DNA from: Mytilus californianus
Lineage: Eukaryota
DNA length: 64,000 bases
NCBI RefSeq assembly: GCF_021869535.1
Contig: NW_026262674.1
Span: forward strand, 1,364,001 to 1,428,000
Direction: 5' to 3'
Both the position numbers and the translations under genes were made by a program. The notes below the pieces were generated by a model. It did no database searches and was not told the origin of the DNA. It worked only from the letters and a program-made list of their open reading frames with translations. Positions 1,637 through 58,330 of the stretch are shown in pieces; the stretch's first letter is position 1; each line of letters starts with the position of its first letter.

Positions 1637-3735
1637 ACATGAACACATGCTGATGACAATTCTTTTACACTTCTGTAATATAAAGTACACATGAACACAT
1701 CCTGATGACAATTCTTTTACACATATGTAATATAATGACAATTCCTTTACACATCTGTAATATAAAGTACACATAAACACTTCCTGGTGACTGTTCTTTT
1801 ATACACCTGGAATATATAGTACACATGAACACATCCTGATGACAATTCTTTTCCAAATCTGTAATATAAACTACACATGAACACATCCTGATGACAATTC
1901 TTTTCCACATCTGTAATATCAAGTACACATGAACACATCCTGATGATAATTCTTTTACACATCTGTAATATAAAGTACACACGAACACATCCTGATGACA
2001 ATTCTTTTACACATCTGTAATATAAAGTACACATGAATACATCCTGATGACAATTGTTTTACACATCTGGAATATAAAGTACACATGAACACTTCCTGAT
2101 GACAATTCTTTTACACATCTGGAATATAAAGTACACATGAACAGCCTGATGACAATTCTTTTACACATCTGTAATATAAAGTACACATGAACACATCCTG
2201 ATGACAATTCTTTTACACACCTGGAATATAAAGTACACATGAACACATCCTGATGACGATTCTTTTACACATCTGTAATATAAGGTACACATGAACACAC
2301 CCTGATGATAATTCTTTTACACATCTGGAATATAAAGTACACTTGAACACATCCTGATGACAATTCTTTTACACATCTGGAATATAAAGTACACATGAAC
2401 ACACCCTGATGATAATTCTTTTACACATCTGGAATAAAAAGTACACATGAACACTTCCTGATGACAATTCTTTTACACATCTGGAATATAAAGTACACAT
2501 GAACACAGCCTGATGACAATTCTTTTACACATCTGTAATATAAAGTACACATGAACACATCCTGATGACAATTCTTTTACACATCTGGAATATAAAGTAA
2601 ACACGAACACAGCCTGATGACAATTCTTTTACACATCTGGAATATAAAGTACACATGAACACATCCTGATGACAATTCTTTTACACATCTGGAATATAAA
2701 AATCACATGAACACAGCCTGATGACAATTCTTTTACACATCTGTAATATAAAGTACACATGAACACACCCTGATGATAATTCTTAAACACATCTGGAATA
2801 TAAGTACACATGAACACACCCTGATGATAATTCTTTTACACATCTGGAATATAAACTACACATGAACACATCCTGATGACAATTCTTTTACACATCTGGA
2901 ATATAAAGTACACATGAACACATCCTGATGACAATTCTTTTACACATCTGTAATATAAAGTACACATGAATACTTCCTGATGACAATTCTTTTACACATC
3001 TGTAATATAAAATACACATGAACACATCCTGATGACAATTCTTTTACACATCTGTAATATAAAGTACACGTGAACAAAGCCTGATGACAATTCTTTTACG
3101 CATCTGTAACATAAAGTACACATGAACACTTCCTGATGACAATTCTTTTTCACATCTGGAATATAAAGTACATATGAACACATCCTGATGACAATTCTTT
3201 TACACATCTGTAATATAAAGTGCACATGAACACATCCTGATGACAATTCTTTTACACATCTGTAATATAAAGTACACATGAACACACCCTGATGACAATT
3301 CTTTTACACATCTGTAATATAAAGTACACATGAACACACCCTGATGTTAATTCTTTTACACATCTGGAATATAAAGTACACATGAACACATCCTGATGAC
3401 AATTCTTTTACACATCGGTAATATAAAGTACACATGAACACATCCTGATGACAATTCTTATACACATCTGTAATATAAAGTACACATGAACACACCCTGA
3501 TGACAATTGTTTTACACATCTGGAATATAAAGTACACATGAACACATCCTGATGACAATTCTTTTACACATCTGTAATATAAAGTACACATGAACACATC
3601 CTGATGACAATTCTTTTACACATCTGTAATATAAAGTACACATGAACACATCCTGATGACAAATCTTTTACACATCTGGAATATAAAGTACACATGAACA
3701 CATCATGATGCCAATTCTTTTACACATCTGGAATT
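1637..3735 (+). repeat. 52-bp tandem minisatellite, about 40 copies, probably ZF-derived
   Basis: Unit acacatctgtaatataaagtacacatgaacacatcctgatgacaattctttt; ORF-track repeats are offset by 312 = 6x52. Confidence 0.95.
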
Positions 3736-11270: not shown

Positions 11271-13000
11271 AACTGCTCCCTGTGGTACTTTCATTCCACT
11301 GCGTTTTTATTCCGGGTAGCTGTTTTTCACTAGAGAATATTGGATGTAAATAGTGTGAAAGCGTCAATCTTGGTATCATTGTTTTTGTTTATATTCATGA
11401 TATTAGACCGGTTTATTGTTAACATAAATAAATGGGTTAAAATTAGATTTTCAAGGAACCAGTTTAATTAATCTGAGTCAATCTAGCCAGGGACTTTCTA
11501 TACTAAGAGAAATATATAGAAAGTCCCTGATCTAGCGAATAATCATGATTGATGATGATGAGGAGGATATTTTTATAACTTAAAATACTTTCAACAATAA
11601 TCAAGACATAAAACTTGATATAAACCAAAGAGCAGATGTGTTCTTACAGAAAGTTTCAATTATAGATATTGACATAGAAGATATGATTTAATCTCCAAGT
11701 CAACCCGCGAATACACAGAAAAACTTCGGCAATTTAGTACATATACAAATAACAATTAGTGATAATTTAAAAGTATATGCCAATTTTATAGATTTACATA
11801 GAAATATTATTTAAATCTTATTCGTTAATAAGAATTATCATTGTGTTATCTTGTGTTTAAAATGAGTACTAAAACACTTCATCAATGTATGGATCTAAAG
11901 CACTTGAGTAATCAATCCCGGTATAAAATAACTAGTGCTATCATTCCAGTACAAAATCACTAGTGAAATCATTCCTGGTTCAAAAGCAATAGTGTGGACA
12001 TTCCGTGGATGAAAACTCACCATTTATTACATAAATCAACTTTGCAAGTTTCGAATACATCAAAAAATATCAATAAGCCCAATTTTATATATATTTCCCC
12101 TTCAAAAAAACTTTTTTAGAACCTTATAATGACTGGTGGATGTTTTATCGGATAAAAGAAAAAAGTGATTTTTTGTTGGTGGATAAAAATCACTAGGTAT
12201 TTTATTCCTCCGGATAAAGTGCACTGGCGGAATCAAACCACTGTTACAGTACTACATTTGTAGGTCAGGCCCAATCCATTGATAGATTCAGGGAACAGTA
12301 GATTCAGGGAACAGCTCACTTCAGCTGTTCACTGTTCTATTAATTAATAGCATTAATTAAGATTGTACACAGTTTTAATCACAAATTTGATATTTTCATT
12401 GCCTAATTTTGTAAATAGTTCACGTATGAGAACAATATGTAATCATCAGATGTCGATGGAATATTGTATACCAAAAGAAGAAGATGATAACATATTTTAC
12501 AGAATTTTATTTGGTTTTCAAACATTCTTTTAACACATTCAACATGTTCAATGTGACATACTTTCTCAGTTGTTAGTTCAAGTTAATATAAATGAAACTA
12601 GAATTGAATGCCTGAATGAAAATGAATGAAATATTTAAATTTATATTTGATTTATGCCATTCATCTTGTGTTTTTGTGTGTGCAATTTATGAAAAAAATA
12701 ATGGTAACAATATTTATTTGAGTGCTCTGACGAATTTTAATCCATTTGACGCTATTGATAGCTGAAAATGACTGTTATCTCCTGACAGTAAAGGGCATAA
12801 CTACGTACCTTCATATATAGTATTGTAGTAGTAAAACTACCCTAACATGTAGATGCTTAAATGTAGAATATGTTGTAATTCACCAAAACAGTGTATACAA
12901 TATATATATATATATTTTAAAGATAATTTACTAGGAAGGTTTAAAATGGTTTAAGTCTTAACTTTTTTGTGTTTCTTACAGAGATAAACCTATTATAAGG

Positions 13001-14125
13001 ATGAATGTGGAAGAGGATCTAGTCACAATCAATGGTACTCTACACAGACATGTGGGAACAGAGGCTGTAGTCACAATCAATGGTACTCTACACAGACATG
13101 TGAGAACAGAGGCTGTAGTCACAATCAATGGTACTCTACACAGACATCTGGGAACAGAGGCTGGTAATAAACTGCATGAATGGGATGTTTGTGCTAGAAA
13201 AAATAGTCCCGGTAGAGACTTAAAGAGACACATGAGAAGGGAAACTGCTGAAAAACATCACAAATGTGATATGTGTGAGAGAGAATTTTCTAGAGAAAGT
13301 AACCTATTAAAGATACACATGAAAACACATACAGGTGATAAACCTCATAACTGTAGTGAATTTGGTAAGGAGTTTAGTCATCTTGGTAATTTACGGGGTC
13401 ACACGAGAACACATTCAAACGAAAAAACTCATGTCTGTGATGTATGTGGTAAAGGGTTTCGTCATCTTGGTAGTTTACAGATTCACATGAGAACGCATAC
13501 AGGGGATAAACATGATAAACCTCATGACTGTGATGTATGTGGTAAAGGGTTTAGTCAGCATGGTAGTTTACAGATTCACATGAGAACACATACAGGGGAT
13601 AAACCTTATGACTGTGGTTTATGTGGTAAAGGGTTTAGTCAGCTTGGTCATTTACAGAGACACATGAGAACACATACAGGGGAGAAACCTTATGCCTGTG
13701 ATGTATGTGGCAAAGGTTTTAGTCTTCTTAATAATTTACAGATTCACATGGGAACACATACAGGGGATAAACCTCATAACTGTGATGTATGTGGTAAAGG
13801 GTTTAGTCAGCTTGGTGATTTACAGAGACACATAAGAACACATATAGGTGATAAACCTCATAACTGTGATGTATGTGGTAAAAGGTTCAGCCTGCTTGGA
13901 AATTTACAAAGACACATGAGAATACATACCGGCGATAAACCTCATGACTGTGATGTATGTGGTAAAGAGTTCAGTCGACTTGGTGATTTACAGAGACACT
14001 TGAGAATACATACAGGTTATAAACCTCATGAATGTGATGTTTGTGGGAAAGGGTTTAGTGATCTTAGTAATTTCAAGAGACATATGAAAACACATACAGG
14101 CAAAACATGTAAACCTCACATTTGA
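13001..14125 (+). CDS. C2H2 zinc-finger protein 1 (ZF exon): 8 canonical, 1 atypical and 2 degenerate fingers
   Basis: CxxC-x12-HxxxH repeats with TGDKP/TGEKP linkers; pyrimidine tract and ttacag acceptor ending at 12981; frame is open from the acceptor. Confidence 0.85.
   Translation: MNVEEDLVTINGTLHRHVGTEAVVTINGTLHRHVRTEAVVTINGTLHRHLGTEAGNKLHEWDVCARKNSPGRDLKRHMRRETAEKHHKCDMCEREFSRESNLLKIHMKTHTGDKPHNCSEFGKEFSHLGNLRGHTRTHSNEKTHVCDVCGKGFRHLGSLQIHMRTHTGDKHDKPHDCDVCGKGFSQHGSLQIHMRTHTGDKPYDCGLCGKGFSQLGHLQRHMRTHTGEKPYACDVCGKGFSLLNNLQIHMGTHTGDKPHNCDVCGKGFSQLGDLQRHIRTHIGDKPHNCDVCGKRFSLLGNLQRHMRIHTGDKPHDCDVCGKEFSRLGDLQRHLRIHTGYKPHECDVCGKGFSDLSNFKRHMKTHTGKTCKPHI
13019..13165 (+). repeat. In-frame 48-bp (16-aa) triplication in ZF1 N-terminus
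   Basis: VTINGTLHRH(V/L)(G/R)TEA occurs three times; ZF2 and ZF3 have one copy. Confidence 0.9.
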
Positions 14126-14174
14126 AATGTTTGTGACTAAGGGTTTAATCAATTGAATAGTTTAAAGGGAAGTA

Positions 14175-14480
14175 TGCAATTAACCTCATGACTGTGATGT
14201 ACAATGTATATGGTACAGAGTTTGGTCAGCATTGTAATTTACATATTGACATGAGAACACATACATGTTATTAACTTCATGACTGTGGTGTATATGGTAC
14301 AGAGTTTGGTCAGCATTGTAATTTACATATTGACATGAGAACACATACATGTTATTAACTTCATGACTGTGGTGTATATGGTACAGAGTTTGGTCAGCAT
14401 TGTAATTTACATATTGACATGAGAACACATACATGTTATTAACTTCATGACTGTGGTGTATGTGGTAAAGGGTTTAGCTA
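14175..14480 (+). repeat. 84-bp tandem repeat of a dead finger, about 3.5 copies
   Basis: Near-identical units, each with TAA in the linker, Cys to Tyr and His to Asp. Confidence 0.85.
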
Positions 14481-14659
14481 GCTTAGTAAGCATGCTAACA
14501 CATGAGAACACATGATTGTGATGTATGTTGCATATGGTTTAGTCATATATTCATGATCTTAGTAATTTAAGGAGACATATGAACATGATGAAAATACATA
14601 CAAGCAAAGCATATAAATTTCACATTTGTAATGTATGTGGTAAAGGATTTAACTAGCTT

Positions 14660-14830
14660 AAATAATAATAAAATTGAGAATGGAAATGGGGAATGTGTCA
14701 AAGAGACAACAACCCGACCACAGAACAGACAACAGCAGAAGGCCACCAACAGGTCTTCAATGCAGCGAGAAATTCCCGCACCCGGAGGCGTCCTTCAGCT
14801 GGCCCCTAAACAAATATATATACTAGTATT
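14660..14830. mobile_element. Short SINE-like interspersed repeat
   Basis: aataaaattgagaatggaaatggggaatgtgtcaaagagacaacaacccgacca; second copy at about 18545-18715 and a stub near 62500. Confidence 0.6.
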
Positions 14831-14903
14831 TCAAAGAAACACATGAGAACACATAAAGGCGATAAAAATCATCACTGGTGAAGTATGTGGTAAACAGTGA
14901 TAA

Positions 14904-15809
14904 AGGTTTCATTTTACTCAATGTGATTTACAGAGACACACAAGAACACATACAGGTTATAGATCTCATGACTGTAATGTATGTGGGAAAGAGTTCAGTC
15001 TACTTTGTGATTTACAGAGACACACGAGAACACATACAGGTTATAGACCTATTGACTGTAATGTATGTGGGAAAGAGTTCAGTCTACTTTGTGATTTACA
15101 GAGACACACTAGAACACATACAGGTTATAGACCTATTGACTGTGATGTATGTGGGAAAGAGTTCAGTCTACTTTGTGATTTACAGAGACACACTAGAACA
15201 CATACAGGTTATAGACCTATTGACTGTGATGTATGTGGGAAAGAGTTCAGTCTACTTTGTGATTTACAGAGACACACGAGAACACTTACAGGTTATAGAC
15301 CTCATTACTGTGCTGTATGTGGGAAAGAGTTCATTCTACTTTGTGATTTACAGAGACACACGAGAACACATACAGGTTATAGACCTATTGACTGTGATGT
15401 ATGTGGGAAAGAGTTCAGTCTACTTTGTGATTTACAGAGACACACGAGAACACATACAGGTTATAGACCTATTGACTGTGATGTATGTGGGAAAGAGTTC
15501 AGTCTACTTTGTGATTTACAGAGACACACGAGAACACTTACAGGTTATAGACCTCATTACTGTGCTGTATGTGGGAAAGAGTTCAGTCTACTTTGTGATT
15601 TACAGAGACACACGAGAACACATACAGGTTATAAACCTCAGGACTGTGATGTATGTGGGAATGGGTTTAGTCATCTTATTGATTTAAGGAGGCATATGAA
15701 AATACATACAGACAAAACATGCAAACCTCACATTCATGACATATGTCAATTTGTGTTGTACCAAACAAATGTATGCAAATACATAACATACAGGCAAATT
15801 ACCTTATGA
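14904..15809 (+). pseudogene. Cryptic ATG-less open frame with 9 near-identical C2H2 fingers (7 intact)
   Basis: Frame offset -1 from the listed 14878 ORF reads (CDVCGKEFSLLCDLQRHTRTHTGYRPID)n; stop-free from 14904 to TGA at 15807-15809. Confidence 0.8.
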
Positions 15810-16189
15810 CTGTAATGTATGTGGTACAGGGTTTTGTTGGCATTGTAATTTACATATTGACATGAAAACATATTAATTTGATGACTGTTGTGTATATGGT
15901 AAAGGGTTTAGCTAGCTTAGAAATGTAAAGAGACACATGAGAACACATACAGGTGATTAATCTCTTGACTGTATCATGTGTATGTGGTAAAGCTTTTAAT
16001 CAGCATGTTGACTCAATGAAACACATTGGAATACATAATGGGGATAAAACTCTGAAATGAGATGTTTGAGGTTTCGGGTTTAATATGAGTGATAATCTAC
16101 ATTCTAAAACACGTACTACATTTGTACTAGTAAATATATAATAACATGGATAATTTACAAAGATAATGAGAACGCATGCTAATGATAAT

Positions 16190-16630
16190 TTATAGACACG
16201 TGAGAACTCAAACTAGTGATTGTTTACATAGACATTTGAGAACACATACCAGTGACAATTTACATAGACACATGAGAACACATACTAGTCTAGTGATGAT
16301 TTACGTAAACACACATGAGAACCCATACTTGTGATAAGGGATAATTTACATAAACACATGAGAACACATACTAGTAATGATTTACGTAAACACACATGAG
16401 AACCCATACTAGTGATAACGGATAATTTATAAGACACATGAGAACACATACTAGAAAATAAGTGATAATTTACGTAGACGTATGAGAAATCATATTAGTG
16501 ATAACTTACATAGACATATGAGAACACATTTATTAGTGATAATTTACACTGAGAACACATACTAGTGATAATTTACATAGACACAAGAGAACACATACTA
16601 GTGATAATTTACATAGACACATGAGAACAC
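16190..16630 (+). repeat. 36-40-bp minisatellite from the finger helix and linker
   Basis: Unit actagtgataatttacatagacacatgagaacacat. Confidence 0.8.
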
Positions 16631-16999
16631 ATATCAGCATGATTAGTAAATAATGGATAAATGTCATTCATCTAGAATAATAGAATACTTGACTGTAAAT
16701 AATCTATGTGTAAATATCTGTTTTTGATTGTATTGTGATGTGTGTGTGGTCTCACTGAAGATAAGTTTTTTTGTAACTAACTATAATTGTTAACCCTCTT
16801 TAAATAAAGAATTAATACTAATATTATTATGATAATTATTATTATGATTGTATGAGAGTTCATCCAGGTATTTTACTATGTTATAAATAGCATTAATTGA
16901 TTGATGGATTTTAAGCATTTTTCGTCACTTTCACGACCCCAGCGTGTCTGGTAAAACAGCCGTTGGACGTCAGAGTAATCTCGGACTAATCATAACGAA

Positions 17000-18779: not shown

Positions 18780-19660
18780 ACACATATGAATGTGTTGTAA
18801 ATGTTTATTTTGTAAATGACAGTTAACGCTTACAGACATACGAACACATATAAATGTGGTCAATTGGTAAATGGCAATCAGAGATTACCCAGACATGAGA
18901 ACAGTCAGAACTTACATAGACATGGGAACAGTCATAGCGTACAGAGATATGAAAGCAGTTAGAACTTAGACATGAGAACAGTCAGAGCTTACATAGACAT
19001 GAGAACCGTCAGAACTTATAGACATGAGAACCGTCAGAGCTTACACAGACATGAGGACCGTCAGAACTTACATAGACATGAGAACAGTCAGAGCTTACAG
19101 AGACATGAAAACAGTCAGAACGTATAGACATGAGAACCGTCAGAGCTTACACATACATGAGGACCGTCAGAGCTTACACAGACATGAGAACAGTCAGAAC
19201 TTACATAGACATGAGAACAGTCAGAACTTACATAGACTGGGAAAATCAGAGCGTACTGAGACATGAAAACAGTTAGAACTTAGACATAAGAACAGTCAGA
19301 GCTTACAAAGACATGAGAACAGTCAGAACTTACATAGACATGAGAACAGTCAGAACTTACATAGACATGGGAAAATCAGAGCGTACTGAGACATGAAAAC
19401 AGTTAGAACTTAGACATAAGAACAGTCAAAGCTTACAAAGACATGAGAACAGTCAGAACTTATAGACATGAGAACAGTCAGAGCTTATAAACATGAGAAC
19501 CGTCAGAGCTTACACAGACAAGAGAACAGTCAGAACTTACATAGACATGAGAATTGTCAGAACTTACAGAGACATGAAAACAGTCAGAACTTATAGACAT
19601 AGGAACAGTTAGAGCTTACACAGACATGAAAACAGTCAGAACGTATAGACATGAGTCAGA
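18780..19660 (+). repeat. 27-bp minisatellite, about 30 copies, ZF-helix derived
   Basis: Unit gacatgagaacagtcagaacttacata; 9-aa periodicity in the ORF track. Confidence 0.9.
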
Positions 19661-24349: not shown

Positions 24350-24871
24350 ATGTATGAGGTAGAAGATTTTGTCACAATCAATGGCACACAACAGAGACAC
24401 ATAAGAACACAGACTGGTACACTTCATAAATGTGGTGTTTGTGGTAGAGAATTTAGTAGATGTAATGACTTGAAGAGACATGTGAGAACACATACTGGCG
24501 AAAAACCTCATGACTGTGATGTTTGTGGTAAAGGGTTTAGTCAGTCTGGTAGTTTACAAAGTCATATGAGAATACATACAGGTGAAAAACCTCATGACTG
24601 TGAAGTATGTGGTAAGCGGTTTAGTCGGCTCTTTATATTACAAATGCACATGAGAACACATATAGGAGATAAACCTTATGAATGTGATACATGTGGTAAA
24701 AGGTTTAGTCAGCATTGTCATTTAAATACACACATGAGAATACATACAGGAGATGAACCTCATAACTGTGATGTATGTGATAAAGTGTTTAGTCGGCTTG
24801 GACATCTACAAAGACACATGAAAACATATACAGGAGATAAACCTTATGAGATGTCTGTGATCAAAATTTAA
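24350..24871 (+). CDS. C2H2 zinc-finger protein 2 (4 canonical fingers plus 1 His-to-Tyr), truncated
   Basis: Canonical fingers and linkers; ttacag acceptor ending at 24315; broken finger remnants continue to about 25140. Confidence 0.7.
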   Translation: MYEVEDFVTINGTQQRHIRTQTGTLHKCGVCGREFSRCNDLKRHVRTHTGEKPHDCDVCGKGFSQSGSLQSHMRIHTGEKPHDCEVCGKRFSRLFILQMHMRTHIGDKPYECDTCGKRFSQHCHLNTHMRIHTGDEPHNCDVCDKVFSRLGHLQRHMKTYTGDKPYEMSVIKI

Positions 24872-29865: not shown

Positions 29866-32733
29866 ATGGATCCCAGTCACGTGGAACAGCAAGAAGAGGT
29901 TCAGCCCCAAGAGGGAGATGTCCCTGAACTATTAGAAAATCCGTCTAAAACAACACATTCAGATGAAAATCCCGAGACTAGGCGAGTACGTGACCTCACG
30001 GAAAAAGGAAAAGGAGCTTTCACAGAAAAACGTGACAAGTTCTGTCAGGAACAAGAGGCTCTCTGGACAGACATTGAATCCCAGTTATTGGAAGTTACCA
30101 CGCCTCCTAACGAGCTCCAGCAACTCCTAACAGCCCAGGACAAACTCGTTAAAGCCTGTAATAATTATCGTAGGCTCACAGATGAATTCCTGGACTTTCT
30201 GAAAAGGACCAGAACATCGGAGAGTCAAAAAGAAATAGAAGCATGTAATCTCTCATTGGATTTTCGTCTGTCCAAAGTGGAACTGGTTATGGAAAAACTA
30301 CACGAGCATCGCCTCGCCCTAACAAAGGCCAAATCCACTAAAACAAAGACCTCAAAGGGTAAGAAAACCTCACACAGCGGTAGCTCTAACGTGTCAGACA
30401 TGTCAAGCCTAGCACGGAGAAAGCGTGCGAAGGCAGAGGCTGCCAAGTCAAAAATAGCCTTTGTCGAAAAACATGCCCTTATCCTACAACAGGAGGCAAT
30501 GTTAGAGGAACAAGCCCTGTTCAGACAAATTGAAATGGAACAGGAAGCAGCACGCAAAAAGGCTGAAATGGAACAGGAAGCCACACGTAAAAAGGCAGAA
30601 ATGGAGCAAGAAGTCGCTCAACGTAAAGTTCAACTAGAACAGGAGGCCGCACAGAGAACAGTTCACTTAGAACAAGAGGCCATGCGCAGGAAGGCTCAAA
30701 TGCAACAAGAAGCCGCACGAGTAAGCCGGGAAAAGACCGAGCTGAAAGCCAAATTTAACCTTCTTGAAGCACAGAGAGAAGCTGCAGCCGCAGAAGTAGA
30801 GGCTCGTATCCTGGAATACGACGACAGCCAAGCATTTAGCGATCTCCCTGATGAAACGGAAGACCCTCTCCAGCGTGTGAAAGATTTCGTCAATAAGCAT
30901 CCTGTACCAACTGCTGTACGGGAAGTAACAGGACCTCAAAAGCAAATTCCTGTTAAGATTGAGCTGAGTCATGAAGCACCAGCGTTTGTGCCATCTGTGG
31001 CACTGAACTTGCCGTCACAGACATCTGCTGTCTTGCCTTCCGATACTAAGTCACCGGAAGTTACCTTAATCCCAGATCTGGGAATAGTAACCGGCATGCA
31101 AAAACTAGGCCTTTCAGATGAGATCCCTGCTGAACACCAAAAACAGGGTGTTAAAGAAAAGATCCCTGTTGCACACCAGCAACAAATCAACCCTACATCG
31201 GAGATAACTAGATTTCTTTTACGTAAGGACCTGCTTTTAACCCGACTAACAAGCTTTAACGATCGGGCAGAATCCTTTCATACATGGAAAGCAAGTTTTA
31301 ACAACGTGACTGACGAGTTGCAAGTCTCTGACTCGGAACAGATTGATTTACTGATCAAGTGGCTCGGTCCAGAGTCTGCTAAACATGCCATTAGCATAAG
31401 AGCGTCGAACGCCAATAATCCTACAAAAGGTATACAAAGACTATGGAAGAGGCTTGACGAGCGGTATGGTGCTCCAGAAATGTTGGAGGCCTCACTCACG
31501 AGTAAACTTGCCAAATTCCCAACCTTGACGAATAAGGACAACGCACGTCTCTATGAACTGTCTGACATTCTATTAGAAATAGAATATCACAAGGAAAATC
31601 CCAAGCTGGGATGTTTGCTAGCTTATTTCGACTCTTCGTCCGGGATAAATCCTATTGTGGAAAAACTGCCATATGGACTCCAAGAAAAGTGGATTACAAG
31701 GGCGTCTAGATACAAATCTAACCACGGCGTTGCCTTTCCTCCTTTTACAGAGTTATCTGCATTCATCAGTGAAATCAGCAGAATTAAAAACGATCCTGGA
31801 TTCATCTTTGGGTCAAAAGTCACACCAAATACAAAAGGTGCTGCGCCAAGGTTCACGTCTTACCCCAAGACTAAAGTTGGTACTCATAAAACAGCGGTTG
31901 AGCAGCAATCTGGAGACGCCAGCAAACAAGGTCTTTGTATTCTGCACAATACAAAGCATTCCTTAAATGAATGTCGAGCGTTCCGAGCCAAATCAATAGA
32001 GGAACGCAAAGGTCTTTTGAAAGAAAACAATGTCTGTTACACGTGTTGTGATTCTACCAAACACAGGAGCCGGGAATGCAATGCACGCATAAGTTGTAAA
32101 GAATGTGGAAGTAAACAACACACTACCGCACTTCACATAACTAGACCACAGCAACCTGCAAGTTCTCAGTCTAGCTCGCCCAAGGAAGCCTACGGCGGGG
32201 AGCCAACAGAATCCGCTGAAACTAAGTCAACCTCAGTGAACTCTACCTGTACTGAGATCTGCAAGGATACATATAGCGGGAAATCTTGTGCTAAAATACT
32301 ACCTGTGAATGTTTATCACAAAGATAACCAGGACAAAGTTATCCGGATGTACGCCATCATGGACGACCAAAGCAACCGGTCACTAGCATCGCCTGAATTC
32401 TTCAACCTTTTCGACGTAAAAGACAAACCGGAGAACTATACCTTATCAACATGCTCCGGCAGAGTAGTCACTTCCGGGAAAAGAGGAAGAGGTTTCGTCA
32501 TGGAATCAATAAATGGCAATGACAAATTTGACCTGCCTGTACTGATAGAATGTGATCATATTCCTAATAATAGGGACGAAATACCGACTCCTAAAGTCAC
32601 AATGCTTCACCCTCATTTAAAAGAACTCAGAGGTAGCATTCCACCAATAGAGGAAAATTGCCAAATTCTTCTCTTAATTGGCAGAGACCTTATAGAGGCA
32701 CACCACCCAGAACTCCATATGCACAACAGTTGA
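29866..32733 (+). pseudogene. gag: BEL/Pao gag and protease part of the polyprotein
   Basis: Coiled coil with 11-aa EQEA repeats; three Cys/His knuckles (CILH..H..C, CYTC..H..C, CKEC..H..H); protease motif YAIMDDQSNRSL; frameshift near 32707. Confidence 0.85.
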
Positions 32734-33248
32734 AACTAGGTTGGGTAGTGATAGGAGAAACTTGCATTAACAAGCAGCATGTGCCTCTTGAATTAAATGT
32801 CAAAATAACCAACATTTTACCTACAGGACAACCGTCAACGTTTCAACCATGTACAAGCAAATTCGACATTCGGGAAAACTACACAGACCCCGTTAAGAAA
32901 GATTTACAATCGCCTCTCTTTGAAAAAACTAGGGACGATGATAAACCCGGAATGTCATTTGAAGACAAAATGTTTATGAAACAGATGGACAACGAATTTG
33001 TCAGAGACTTGGAAGGAAGTTGGGTAGCACCGTTACCGTTCCGAGTGCCAAGACAGTCTTTGCCTAGCAACAGACCACAAGCTCTTCATCGTGCTAATAT
33101 GTTAGACGCAAGCCTGAATAGAAACCTAGTAAAGCGGGAACACTTCCTCACATTTATGAGTAAGATCCTAGACAATAATCATGCAGAGCTCGCTCCACCG
33201 TTGGACGAACATGAAGAGTGCTGGTATTTACCACCCGAAGAAACCTGA
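32658..33248 (+). pseudogene. BEL/Pao polyprotein middle segment between two frameshifts
   Basis: PYAQQLKLGWVVIG, WVAPLPFR and ECWYLP motifs typical of the Pao pre-RT region. Confidence 0.8.
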
Positions 33249-36240
33249 TCAGATTAGGGGTGTGTTTGATTCATCCGCCAAATGCAACGGAGTTTCACTC
33301 AACAGCGTCCTGCTAACAGGTCCAGACTTGACCAATGATCTCTTGGGAGTACTGCTGCGTTTCAGGAAAGAAATGGTCGCAGTAACTGCAGACGTTCAAC
33401 ACATGTTTCACTGCTTTGTAGTAAGAAAAGACCACCGAAATTATCTGAGATTTTTATGGCATAAAAACAACGACCTACAAGAGAACCTTGTCGAATTCCG
33501 CATGAGAGTTCATGTTTTTGGAAATAGTCCGTCACCTGCCGTTGCTACGCTTGGACTCAGAAAAGCAGCTCAGGCATCAGAACAAGAGTTCGGCAGTCAC
33601 GTGACTAGCTTTGTTACAAGAGACTTCTATGTCGACGACGGTCTTACATCATGTCCTACAAAAGAGGAAGCTGTTAAGCTCATGAAGGACACACAGCAAG
33701 CATTGGCAAAGTATGGAAACTTACGGCTTCACAAGTTCGCCTCTAATTGTGCGGAAGTTATGTCTGCGTTTCATGCCAGTGATTTGGCTTCAAATCTGAA
33801 GGATCTAGACTTAGAATCCGACAGCAAACCCCTACAACGTAGTCTTGGGCTCAGCTGGGACGTAAACACTGACAACTTCTTATTTCAATTAACATCAGAA
33901 AACAAACCGATCACTCGGAGAGGAATTTTATCAACGATAAACAGTCTCTACGATCCTCTGGGATTTTTGGCTCCGGTGATTATACAAGGGAAACTCCTAT
34001 TAAGGAAAATAGTATCAGAAACCGTCGATTGGGACCAACCTCTCTCTGATGAGACAGCAGCTGAGTGGAAATCTTGGAGAGATACTCTAATTGCTATCGA
34101 AACATTGCGCATTCCACGTACCTACGTGCCGTATCTCAGCAAAACCGCCACAAAGGAGTTACATGTCTTCTCTGATGCATCAGAAAAAGCCATAGCAGCT
34201 GTTGCATATCTACGCACGACCGACAGTAGTGGTGAACCAAACATAGGTTTCATTCTTGTGAAAGCTAAAGTTGCACCAACAAGTGGTCATACTATTCCAC
34301 GACTTGAACTATCAGCTGCTGTATTAGCAGTTGAGATCACCCAAACCGTCATGGATAATTTAGATTTACATATAGACACCGTAAAATTCTACACAGACAG
34401 TAAAGTGGTTTTAGGTTACATCAGTAACGAGACAAGAAGGTTCTTCATCTACGTCGCCAATAGAGTAGAGAAAATAAGGAAATGTAGCTCTCCAAGTCAA
34501 TGGAATTATGTACCAACTAACCGTAATCCCGCAGACTCGGGAACAAGGTCCGTACCAGCCCACGAAATTCATAGCAGTGAATGGTTATTGGGACCAAGAC
34601 AACTTCTTTCCTCAGAACAGAAGAATTCTGAGGACATATATCAGCTGATAGATCCAGAGGAAGATGGAGAAATCCGTGCAACTGTTAATGTTGCAAAAAC
34701 ATTTGCCACACTTGAGCATAAAGGTATCGGAACTGATAGATTCAACCGATTCTCCAACTGGACATCACTTGTGCGAGCGATAGCCTTTTTGGAACGTTTC
34801 TCCCGTTTACACGGGTCAAAACAGGCATCATCAGTGACTTCTTTGGATAGTTTTTCGAATGCCGAAAATTTCATCTTAATATCTGCACAACATGAAGTTT
34901 ATGGAGATGAAATAGATTGTATAAAACGTCAGGAACAAATTAATAAGCGGAGCCCGATAGCTAACCTCAATCCGTTTTTGGACGAAAGAGGACTATTACG
35001 AGTAGGAGGCCGTATTGTCAAATCTGACTTAAACTTCCGTGAAAAGAAACCATTGATCGTCCCTGGACGCCATCATATAGCGATATTATTAGTTCAACAC
35101 TACCACGACAAGATAAAACATCAAGGTCGCCATTTCACAGATGGAGCGATTCGATCCGCAGGATTTTGGATCGTTGGAGCAAAACGCTTGATCTCTTCTA
35201 TTATTCACAAATGTGTAACATGCCGCAAACTCAGAGGAAAAACAGAGTATCAAATCATGTCTGATTTGCCAGAGGACCGTCTTGAACCGTCACCTCCGTT
35301 TACTAACGTTGGAATAGACACCTTTGGCCCCTGGACAATTGTTTCACGTAAAACACGTGGTGGGTACGCCAACTCTAAACGTTGGGCAATTTTATTCACA
35401 TGCTTAGTGACAAGAGCTATTCACATCGAATTAATCGAGGAAATGAGTTCTTCAGCCTTCATAAACGCCGTCAGGAGATTCGCCGCTATAAGAGGCCAAG
35501 TTAAGATTTTCCGATCTGACCGTGGAACGAACTTTATTGGCGCAATCGACGATTTAAAGATTGACTCAATCAACGTTGAAGATGGACCCTTCAAGAACTT
35601 TCTGTATAATTCTGGTACAACTTGGATCTTCAATCCGCCGCATTCGTCCCACATGGGTGGAGCCTGGGAGAGGATGATTGGTATTACCAGGAGAATTCTT
35701 GATTCTATGCTTCTAAACGCAGCCGGAAGAAGCCTAACACATGATGTGCTTAACACACTAATGGCAGAAGTTTCAGCAATAGTGAACTCTAGACCTCTGG
35801 TACCGGTATCAACAGATCCAGAGAATCCGTTAATATTAACTCCGGCTATGTTATTGACACAGAAAACCGACTACATTTTCACTTCAGATCATCTTGGAGA
35901 ATTCGACAAACGAGATCTCTGTCTTGCCGAATGGAGGCGAGTACAGGCTCTGGCCAGTGTTTTCTGGTCCCGTTGGAGGAAAGAGTACCTGCCGTTACTA
36001 CAACAACGACGAAAATGGACCGAAGATCGCCGTGATCTCATCGAAGGAGACGTCATTCTTCTAAAGGATAAAAACCTTTGCCGTACCCAATGGTCCGTTG
36101 GAATTATAGTGAATTCATTTAAAAGTTCAGACGAACATGTCCGAAAAGCAGAAGTGCGAGTAATCGTTAATGGAAAAGCCACAACCTACACACGTCCTAT
36201 CGTGGACATGATTCTTCTCGTAGAGAACAACCCTATGTAA
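33181..36240 (+). pseudogene. pol: BEL/Pao RT, RNase H and integrase
   Basis: FYVDD; LHVFSDAS, IPRLEL and NPAD (RNase H); HxxxxxH..CxxC; GIDTFGP, SDRGTNF and GGAWERM (DDE). Confidence 0.9.
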
Positions 36241-44688: not shown

Positions 44689-44894
44689 TATATATATACT
44701 TCTTGTACATGTTGTATTATTAAATATATAGTATGGGATTAGAATTACCCAAACATACAGATGCATAAATGCAGAGAATGTCTAAATTGCAGAAAGGTAT
44801 CAAAAGGTTTATATGTCTTTATTTTTTTTGTGTTCCTTACAGAGTCGTTCAAGAACGCACATACTGGTCAGTGGAGATAAACATTATCAATAAG

Positions 44895-46073
44895 ATGTTA
44901 GAGGGAGGAGAGGATTTAGTCACACTCAACGGTACTCTACAGAGACACATAAACATACAGGCTGGTACAACACATCATAAATGTGATGTCTGTGCTAGAG
45001 AATTTAGTCAAAGAGGTCACTTAAAGAGACACTTGAAAACACATACTGGTGAAAAACCTCATGAGTGTGATGTTTGTTTTAGAAAATTTTCTCGCAGTGA
45101 TGACTTAAAGAGACATACGAGAACACATACTGGTGAAAAGCCTCATAAATGTGATGTTTGTGCTAGTGAATTTTCTCAAGGTAGTCAACTAAAAGCACAC
45201 ATGAGTACACATACTGGAGATAAACTTCATGGCTGTGATTTATGTGGTAAAGGGTTTAGTTATCTTAGTAGTTTACAGAGTCACATGAGAATACATACAG
45301 GCGTTAAACCCCATGAGTGTGATGTATGTAGTCAACGGTTTAGTCGGCGTTGGAATTTACAGATACACATGAGAACACATACAGGTGATAAACCTCATAA
45401 CTGTGATGTTTGTGATAAACGCTTTAGTCAGCATGGTTCTTTACGGATTCACATGAGAACACATACAGGGAATAAACCTTATGACTGTGGTGTATGTGGT
45501 ACAGGGTTTAGTCGGCATTGGAATTTACAGACTCACATGAGAACACATACAGGAGATAAACCTTATGACTGTGATGTATGTGGTAAAGGGTTTAGTGAGC
45601 AAGGTAGTTTACAGAGACACATGAGAATACATACAGGGGATGAATATGATAAACCTCATGACTGTGATTTATGTGGTAAAGGGTTTAGTCAGCTTGGTAG
45701 TTTACAGATTCACATGAGAACACATACAGGTGATAAACCATATGACTGTGATGTATGTGGTAAAAGGTTTAGTGAGCAGGGTAATTTACAGACTCACATG
45801 AGAACACATACAGGTGATAAACTGTATGACTGTGGTGAATGTGGTAAGGGGTTTAGTCATATTAGGAATTTACGGGATCACATGAGAATACATACAGGTG
45901 ATAAACCTTATATATGTGATGTATGTTGTAAAGGGTTTAGTCAGCATAGTAATTTACAGACTCACATGAGAACACACACAGGTGATAAACTGTATGACTG
46001 TGGTGAATGTGGTAAGGGGTTTCGTCGTATTAGTAATTTATGGGATCACATGAGAACACATACAGGTGATTAA
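44895..46073 (+). CDS. C2H2 zinc-finger protein 3 (13 fingers)
   Basis: 13 canonical fingers; ttacag acceptor ending at 44842, so the listed ORF start at 44769 is probably intronic; ATG at 44895 aligns with the ZF1 and ZF2 Met. Confidence 0.85.
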   Translation: MLEGGEDLVTLNGTLQRHINIQAGTTHHKCDVCAREFSQRGHLKRHLKTHTGEKPHECDVCFRKFSRSDDLKRHTRTHTGEKPHKCDVCASEFSQGSQLKAHMSTHTGDKLHGCDLCGKGFSYLSSLQSHMRIHTGVKPHECDVCSQRFSRRWNLQIHMRTHTGDKPHNCDVCDKRFSQHGSLRIHMRTHTGNKPYDCGVCGTGFSRHWNLQTHMRTHTGDKPYDCDVCGKGFSEQGSLQRHMRIHTGDEYDKPHDCDLCGKGFSQLGSLQIHMRTHTGDKPYDCDVCGKRFSEQGNLQTHMRTHTGDKLYDCGECGKGFSHIRNLRDHMRIHTGDKPYICDVCCKGFSQHSNLQTHMRTHTGDKLYDCGECGKGFRRISNLWDHMRTHTGD

Positions 46074-55949: not shown

Positions 55950-56735
55950 ACATTCTGACAATCAGAACTAACACAGACATGAGAACAACCAGAACTAACA
56001 GAGACACGAGAACAATCAGAACTAACACAGGCATGAGAACAACCAGAACTAACAGAGAAACGAGAACAATCAGAACTAACACAGGCATGAGAACAATTAG
56101 AACTAACAGAGACACGAGAACAATCAGAACTAACACAGGCATGAGAACAACCAGAACTAACAGAGACACGAGAACAATCAGAACTAACACAGGCATGAGA
56201 ACAACCAGAACTAACAGAGACACGAGAACAATCAGAACTAACACAGGCATGAGAACAACCAGAACTAACAGAGACACGAGAACATACAGAACTAACAGAG
56301 ACACGAGAACAATCAAAACTAACAGAGACACGAGAACAATCAGAACTAACACAGACATGAGAACAATCAGAACTAACAGAGACACGAGAACAAACAAAAC
56401 TTACACAGACATGAAAACAATCAGAAAAAACACAGACAAGAGAACAATCAGAACTAACAGAGACACGAGAACAATCAGAACTAACAGAGACACGAGAACA
56501 GTCAGAACTTACACAGACACGAGAACAATCAGAACTAACAGAGACACGAGAACAATCAGAACTAACATAGACACGAGAACAGTCAGAACTTACACAGACA
56601 TAAGAACAATCAGAACTAACAGAGACACGAGAACAATCAGAACTTACACAGACATGAGAACAATCAGAACTAATAGAGACACGAGAACAATCAGAACTAA
56701 GAGACACGAGAACAGTCAGAACTTAAAGACTTGAA
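55950..56735 (+). repeat. 27-bp minisatellite, about 29 copies
   Basis: Unit gacacgagaacaatcagaactaacaga, alternating with ggcatgagaacaacc variants; explains ORFs 55783, 55865 and 55928. Confidence 0.95.
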
Positions 56736-57089: not shown

Positions 57090-58330
57090 GATACGGTATA
57101 AGTGTTCTATGTTTTACTGACAGCTAGAACTCAAAGCGTGAACACATACTTATGATAAACCTAATTAATGTGGTGTAAGTGTTCAATGTTTTACTGGCGA
57201 CTAGTCTAAGAACTTACAGAGATCTGTGAACACATTCTGGTGATAAACCTAATTAAGTGCTCCTTGTTTTACTAACAGCTCGAACTCACAGAGAGAACTG
57301 TTAACACTTACTGGTTATAAACCTAATTAATGTGATGTAAGTGCTCCATGTTTTACTGACAGCTAAATCTTACAGAGAGACATGTGGACACATGCTTGTA
57401 ACAACCTAATTAATGTGGTGTAAGTGTTAATGTTTTACTGACAGCTAGAACTTACAGAGACCCCGACCCTCAAAATATAAAACAACGCAAACACCGACAT
57501 CTAGAATGTGTCTTTGTTAAACTCTGAACGTTCAGTTCTCGAATGAATAAACTAAACAATCATACACATGAGAACACACACTTGAGATAAACTGCATAAC
57601 TGTGAGGTGTGTGGGAAATGATTAAGTCGGCATGATGGTTTACAGAGACACACGAGAACACATACATGTAATTAACCTCATGACCGTGATGTATGGTGTA
57701 AAAGGTTTTGCCAGCATGGTAATTTACATAGACTCATGTGAACACATACTGGTGATAAACCTCTTGACCGTGATGTGTGGTGTTTAGTGAGCTTGGTAAT
57801 TCACATGGACAAATGAGAATACATACACATGAGAAGCTGTATGACTGTGATGTATGTTGTAAAGGATTTAGTCAGCTTGGTAATTTACAGAGACAAATGA
57901 GGATACATATAGGTGATAAGCTGCATAACTGTGATGTATGTTGTAAAGGGTTTAGTGAACATGGGAAAATTTACAGAGACACATGAGAACACATACCGGT
58001 GATACACATTATAAATTTTATTTATTTTATTGAAGATTCAGTAAGAGTAATAATCAACATAGATCGATGCGAACACATACTGGTCATAAATTATCATTAA
58101 TCTTTTTATGTGCTAAATAATTTTATTGGAAGAAGCGACTTACAGAGAACACAATGACATACTTGTGATAAACATAAAAATATGACGCAATGTATTATTT
58201 ATTTGCTTTTTCGAAATGCCTTGAATATACTCTTTAAAACTCATACAGGATTTCATCATAAAACCTTATAAATCTAATTTAGTGACCAGGGTCCAAAATT
58301 AATGAAACTTAACAGACATTGGAGAACATG
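57090..58330 (+). pseudogene. ~78-bp repeats followed by a decayed C2H2 array
   Basis: CDVCCKGFSQLGNLQRQMRIH-type broken fingers; colinear with 5270-7260. Confidence 0.75.

Follow-up and report, generated by a model that had tools for sequence, protein, structure and literature searches.

A zinc-finger gene and the array behind it

The window, a stretch of 64,000 nucleotides of the Mytilus californianus genome (C94:1364001-1428000), contains ZF1, a C2H2 zinc-finger gene with a 374-codon ATG-to-TGA frame on the forward strand (13001-14125). A likely splice acceptor lies in front of this frame at 12980-12981 and, as we read the sequence, the exon opens with one base that completes a codon. The frame matches no Pfam families other than zinc fingers, and its penultimate finger (13946-14029, forward strand) reads KEF...GDLQRH...TGYKPH. 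Near the N-terminus a 48-bp unit is repeated 3.2 times (13012-13163, 95% matches) and encodes TINGTLHRH... three times, a further in-frame tandem amplification located within the presumed coding region. Relatives of the family are found on the same strand at 24350-24871, 44769-46073 and 57564-58004; the member at 57598-57926 has stops within its fingers. The cluster also houses an LTR retrotransposon (29866-36240). Its two long ORFs encode 955 and 1019 aa, and a Pao (BEL/Pao) peptidase and DUF5641 are found in the latter. A 52-bp satellite with 38.5 copies and 92% matches occupies 1735-3734.

Behind ZF1 and also on the forward strand runs a second finger frame (14904-15809). A sequence-only reading had described here about 300 stop-free codons lacking an upstream ATG, with eight near-identical LLCDLQR fingers and a terminal finger, a 252-bp higher-order duplication and a tail resembling the end of ZF1, and all of these elements were recovered. 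Translation yields 301 stop-free codons (14904-15806) closed by a TGA at 15807-15809. The frame is directly preceded by TGA TAA (14898-14903), its sole ATG is at 15696 in codon 265, and the first ATGs available to a scanning ribosome lie in frames other than the finger frame. Eight homogenised 84-bp C2H2 units follow one another at exact 84-bp spacing (14952-15623, forward strand). In a repeat search of the window they are 93-100% alike, and all eight share the helix LLCDLQR and the linker TGYR(P/S). Tandem Repeats Finder describes the array by a period of 252 with 3.1 copies, 94% matches and a score of 1361. This period reflects a higher-order repeat present in two copies (15120-15623, forward strand), as units 3-4-5 (15120-15371) and units 6-7-8 (15372-15623) differ at 2 of 252 bases. 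Both copies carry CTT, encoding Leu in place of the second zinc His, at 15285-15287 in unit 4 and 15537-15539 in unit 7, so that these two units read HTRTL; all four zinc ligands are retained in the other seven of the nine fingers. Variants specific to the window copy include these CTT codons, an Ile codon ATT in the linker and GCT in units 5 and 8. Pfam zf-C2H2 (PF00096) matches nine stretches of the array with E=1.1e-37 and zf-H2C2_2 (PF13465) matches with E=1.2e-66. With its C-x2-C-x12-H-x3-H spacing, the conserved Phe and Leu and HMM scores above the curated cut-off, the array belongs to the C2H2 zinc fingers.

The array ends in a terminal finger (15624-15707) and the tail DKTCKPHI, together spanning 15624-15809 on the forward strand. 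This is a copy of the last finger of ZF1, which ends in GKTCKPHI; the copy is devoid of ZF1's stop and reads on to the TGA at 15807. The earlier proposal that ZF1's 3' end was duplicated and its penultimate finger amplified is supported by two alignments. Scanning the whole window with the consensus unit of the array identified the penultimate finger of ZF1 as its closest relative outside the array (77/84), with the runner-up finger at 72/84. Furthermore, 15600-15972, which runs from the last unit through the terminal finger into dead fingers, is colinear at 76% with 13988-14370, which comprises the ZF1 3' end and its own trailing dead fingers.

Degenerate fingers surround the array. In front of it lies unit 0, a dead head finger (14828-14951, forward strand) with Trp in place of the first Cys and with additional sequence, compared to a normal finger, that puts TGA TAA in frame. 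As a partial duplicate of a coding gene with a dead head and no start, the array resembles an unprocessed pseudogene fragment. Dead finger relics with stops in every frame follow ZF1 (14126-14656, forward strand). Among them, the stop-riddled 84-bp units at 14205-14405 contain copies that are 100% identical over 117 bases, and homogenisation therefore also acts on dead units. Downstream of the array, dead fingers homologous to those behind ZF1 extend over 15810-16633 (forward strand) and include a 36-43-bp repeat array (16152-16633) made of the helix-linker part of the finger alone. In this cluster, DNA is amplified irrespective of whether it can code and of where a finger starts or ends.

Other repeats are found nearby. 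Between the relics behind ZF1 and unit 0 sits a fragment of an interspersed repeat (14657-14827) that is absent at the corresponding point in L013, one of the paralogous loci described below. Its very high copy number was deduced from loose ends and read depth: of the RNA and DNA reads that fall on the fragment, nearly all continue into unlike sequence at both edges. Two 27-bp tandem arrays at 18878-19655 (~29 copies) and 55958-56723 (~28 copies) have a unit that holds AGACATGAGAAC, a string from the end of the finger helix, and resemble satellites seeded by finger fragments. In the array at 55958-56723, several reading frames on the two strands are open, giving ORFs of 204-280 aa; this is the same effect of a repeat-made ORF as is discussed for the finger array below.

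Four copies of the array in the genome

We searched the 1.65-Gb genome with 252 bp of the array and, at an identity of at least 89%, only three further loci matched. L013 (C94:1323590-1324175) lies 55 kb upstream of the window array and has 4 units, L012 (C24:25921030-25922287) has 13 and L011 (C24:21630364-21633229) has 32, as counted by anchor spacing. Related 84-bp finger arrays number in the hundreds, on at least eight contigs, in the whole-genome search. The terminal finger of the three paralogs is 92-95% identical to that of the window copy and the downstream flank is 95-96% identical. Unit 0 with its TGA TAA is present in four of four copies at 95-98% identity. Since the dead head is common to all, the array was headless before the copies separated.

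Unit number is unstable. The four loci have 4, 8, 13 and 32 units, the copy-number instability of a minisatellite, and L011 differs from L012 by 19 units even though both lie within one segmental duplication (>10 kb, 96.5-99% identity). The finger frame is broken in all three paralogs. Units of 82 bp, shortened by a 2-bp deletion, occur at least once in L013, three times in L012 and eight times in L011. Further defects, several of which occur repeatedly, are a +9 insertion, Cys1>Trp, Cys2>Tyr, His1>Pro and His2>Tyr; defective units were amplified as readily as intact ones. The window copy is the sole one of the four in which all units are exactly 84 bp and no stop is found.

Between loci, array identity is 92-97% compared with 91-98% for the flanks. 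The two are equal, so the array shows no special conservation. That gene conversion or selection might conserve it beyond its flanks had been considered with a BLAST flank identity of ~80% and was dropped when segment-wise comparison replaced this value with 91-98%. We also rejected the idea that the C24 copies are alleles or haplotigs of the window, as upstream of them lies an unrelated flank with a transposon terminus at its end.

Both C24 arrays lie flush against the terminus of a dispersed repeat (L012:6860-7009 and L011:6215-6364). The repeat has at least 460 candidate copies, matches to which stop at the junction base, and its last 60 bases contain two short perfect palindromes, recalling the 3' end of rolling-circle (Helitron-type) elements. 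Two more ends of this repeat, 99% identical, occur 9 and 23 kb from L011 with no array attached. The transposon may have inserted beside the array or carried it along. At the remaining locus, a ZF1-like gene precedes the L013 array (L013:5670-7238, C94:1321669-1323237). An in-frame stop (L013:6531-6533) separates two long finger frames of this gene, which is probably a pseudogene or has an intron at this point.

The same comparison bears on the assembly. Eight perfect units might partly be an artefact of a longer or different repeat: DNA-like short-read contigs of run X15 are patchy on the array, with word depth 0 at 15220-15400, X15 joints across the array are short-sided, and short-read contigs break inside it. 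This is highly improbable, as unit, head and tail are the same at four separate loci, the variants give a clean 252-bp higher-order pattern, and 15146-15258 and 15658-15825 are each matched, with 2 mismatches, by contigs of other runs.

Open frame, substitution pattern and expression

In random sequence of the same composition a 301-codon open frame has a probability of ~1e-11. However, this figure is not independent evidence, as the frame results from the eightfold copying of a single stop-free unit. Moreover, two of the three sense frames are open across the array: the second frame (14866-15687, forward strand) has 273 codons, with its first ATG at 14968, and encodes a non-finger repeat peptide. 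The open frames therefore stem from the repeat itself and are no sign of selection. About 5% of the possible substitutions in the finger frame produce a stop, and given the 9 variable sites of the array the probability that no new stop arose is 0.62. The intact frame of the window copy thus needs no selection to be explained. A long ORF composed of near-identical repeats is no evidence of coding, since amplification of a stop-free unit gives an open frame automatically.

The substitutions agree with neutral evolution. We aligned 57 units and counted each distinct single-base variant once, whatever its copy number. The 35 distinct variants comprise 7 synonymous and 28 non-synonymous changes against 17:67 sites, a ratio of 1.0 based on small numbers, and are distributed 13:13:9 over the three codon positions. 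A ratio near one and a flat distribution, small as the counts are, form the pattern of neutral substitution. In the window array itself eight of nine variable sites are non-synonymous and one of these changes removes a zinc ligand.

The sequence-only reading had left two options, an alternative exon that produces a repeat-binding protein or neutral turnover. The former would make the array an alternative 3' exon or a young gene, translated into 8-9 near-identical fingers that bind a simple repeated DNA motif. The 301 open codons, their perfect 84-bp spacing and the seven fingers with complete ligands would fit such a protein. Each unit also holds TTACAG, a possible cryptic splice acceptor, and one acceptor of this type, at 14928-14933, is in phase with the finger frame. 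An exon starting from 14934 would, however, begin on a whole codon, so ZF1's upstream donor would be out of frame, and codons ahead of the acceptor are closed by the in-frame TGA TAA in all four copies, and the frame offers its first ATG at codon 265. The loss of a ligand in two fingers, a substitution ratio of ~1 and the frameshifts of the paralogs also count against this reading. A word-index search of proteins of 165-527 aa returned none more than 52% identical to the finger frame. We regard a translated exon as very unlikely; the dead head, the neutral ratio, the lost ligands and the frameshifted paralogs favor turnover instead.

RNA reads add little to this choice. In raw RNA of run X21 (~6% of one run, at least 97% likeness) depth on the array is 0-2, and on the ZF1 control it is 0-1.9. 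This sample contained no joints on the array and neither a joint nor a loose end at the proposed acceptor, which counts against splicing only weakly because the positive control is also near zero. The few sense-oriented X21 reads, consistent with a translated exon, fall at the array ends (14858-15038 and 15582-15762) with a depth of ~2. Contigs of RNA library X12 have a word depth of 0-4 on the array versus 15-337 on ZF1 bins 13410-14133, although these short contigs may derive from paralogs.

The array could also be transcribed and left untranslated, as ZF1 read-through or 3'-UTR or as a non-coding RNA, perhaps acting on related zinc-finger transcripts. It lies 780 bp downstream of the ZF1 stop on the same strand, and the trace of sense reads on ZF1 and on the array ends is of similar depth (~2). 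Yet depth falls to 0-0.14 at 14134-14495, between the two, and an AATAAA is located at the repeat-fragment junction (~14667) on the way from ZF1 to the array. The heavy read coverage at 14496-14857 stems from copies of the interspersed repeat elsewhere, as 94% of these reads continue into unlike sequence. Together with the lack of any sign of function, these data make a transcript of this kind very unlikely.

Origin of the array and comparison with known finger repeats

Overall, the array is very probably a headless, non-coding relic of the 3' end of ZF1 that evolves as an 84-bp minisatellite. The sequences demonstrate its anatomy, its descent from the ZF1 3' end, the conserved dead head, the neutral substitution pattern and the instability and decay of the paralogs. 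Most likely, an ancestral tandem duplication of a ZF1-type 3' end took along the penultimate and terminal fingers together with the dead ones that follow, and the duplicate came without promoter, start codon or the first fingers of the gene. The 84-bp unit of the penultimate finger was then multiplied and homogenised, presumably through slippage or unequal exchange, of which we take unequal exchange to be the probable mechanism. Amplification would have proceeded in the manner of a minisatellite, single units first and then the 252-bp block. The open frame would be inherited from the one stop-free unit copied eight times, with little time for decay, rather than held open by selection, and the window copy is presumably not translated.

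Lineage-specific tandem C2H2 clusters with pseudogene fragments occur elsewhere, for example the vertebrate KRAB-ZNF clusters. Like these, the mussel cluster consists of tandem paralogs on one strand, partial duplicates, dead relics and transposon insertions. In KRAB-ZNF-type clusters, however, fingers within a gene normally differ, as they do in ZF1, and eight near-identical neighbors are unusual. Such near-identity marks recent DNA-level amplification.

DNA-level homogenisation had prompted a comparison with PRDM9-type arrays, which stands for the DNA repeat alone. The zinc-finger array of PRDM9 is an 84-bp coding minisatellite (PMC3890296; PMC5519329), and its diversity is concentrated at the contact positions -1, 3 and 6 (PMC5519329). 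The mussel array shares the tandem 84-bp one-finger units with very high DNA identity, the turnover in unit number and the higher-order duplications. In PRDM9, however, the array follows KRAB, SSXRD and PR/SET domains in a gene that is intact and expressed, whereas the mussel array has neither start nor N-terminal domain and is cut off by the upstream TGA TAA. Nor is the frame kept while unit number varies, as amplified 82-bp units and lost ligands occur in the paralogs, which have 4, 13 and 32 units. The contact-residue signature is absent as well. Using the contact-diversity statistic of PMC5519329, for which the uniform expectation is 0.11, we obtained a proportion of 0.00 for the eight units and 0.04 including the terminal finger; the values for ZF1 and the gene at 44769 are 0.24 and 0.21. 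Helix positions -1, 2, 3 and 6 are invariant across the eight fingers, and the differences fall in the linker, the hairpin and one zinc ligand. With no contact-residue diversity, no gene head and a substitution ratio of ~1, a PRDM9-like diversifying array was rejected.

The degenerate PRDM7 of ruminants is a better counterpart than PRDM9. PRDM7 of ruminants and horse and PRDM9 of dog are degenerate paralogs with stops and frameshifts inside the array, and ruminant PRDM7 retains the 84-base units but with multiple disruptive mutations (PMC4874674). There, as in the three mussel paralogs, 84-bp repeats outlive coding function as a minisatellite. The likeness has its limits: these are whole-gene paralogs, whereas the mussel array represents just the 3' end of an ordinary multi-finger gene from a zinc-finger cluster, and the window copy, unlike them, has so far no stop inside the array.

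A further use of the arrays may be imagined, in which the window copy is a newborn or alternatively spliced coding exon with eight fingers of the same specificity, or in which the headless arrays form a reservoir of fingers with the unusual recognition helix LLCDLQR. In the latter case the finger would be amplified off-gene and fed back to expressed neighbors by unequal exchange or gene conversion. We consider both very unlikely.

As a probable non-coding relic of ZF1 the array opens no new biological question. Its four loci with 4, 8, 13 and 32 units constitute a natural series of a dead zinc-finger unit acting as a minisatellite, in which frameshifted units were themselves propagated. The series provides a neutral baseline for studies that take the homogenisation of fingers as a PRDM9-like signal in invertebrate genomes.
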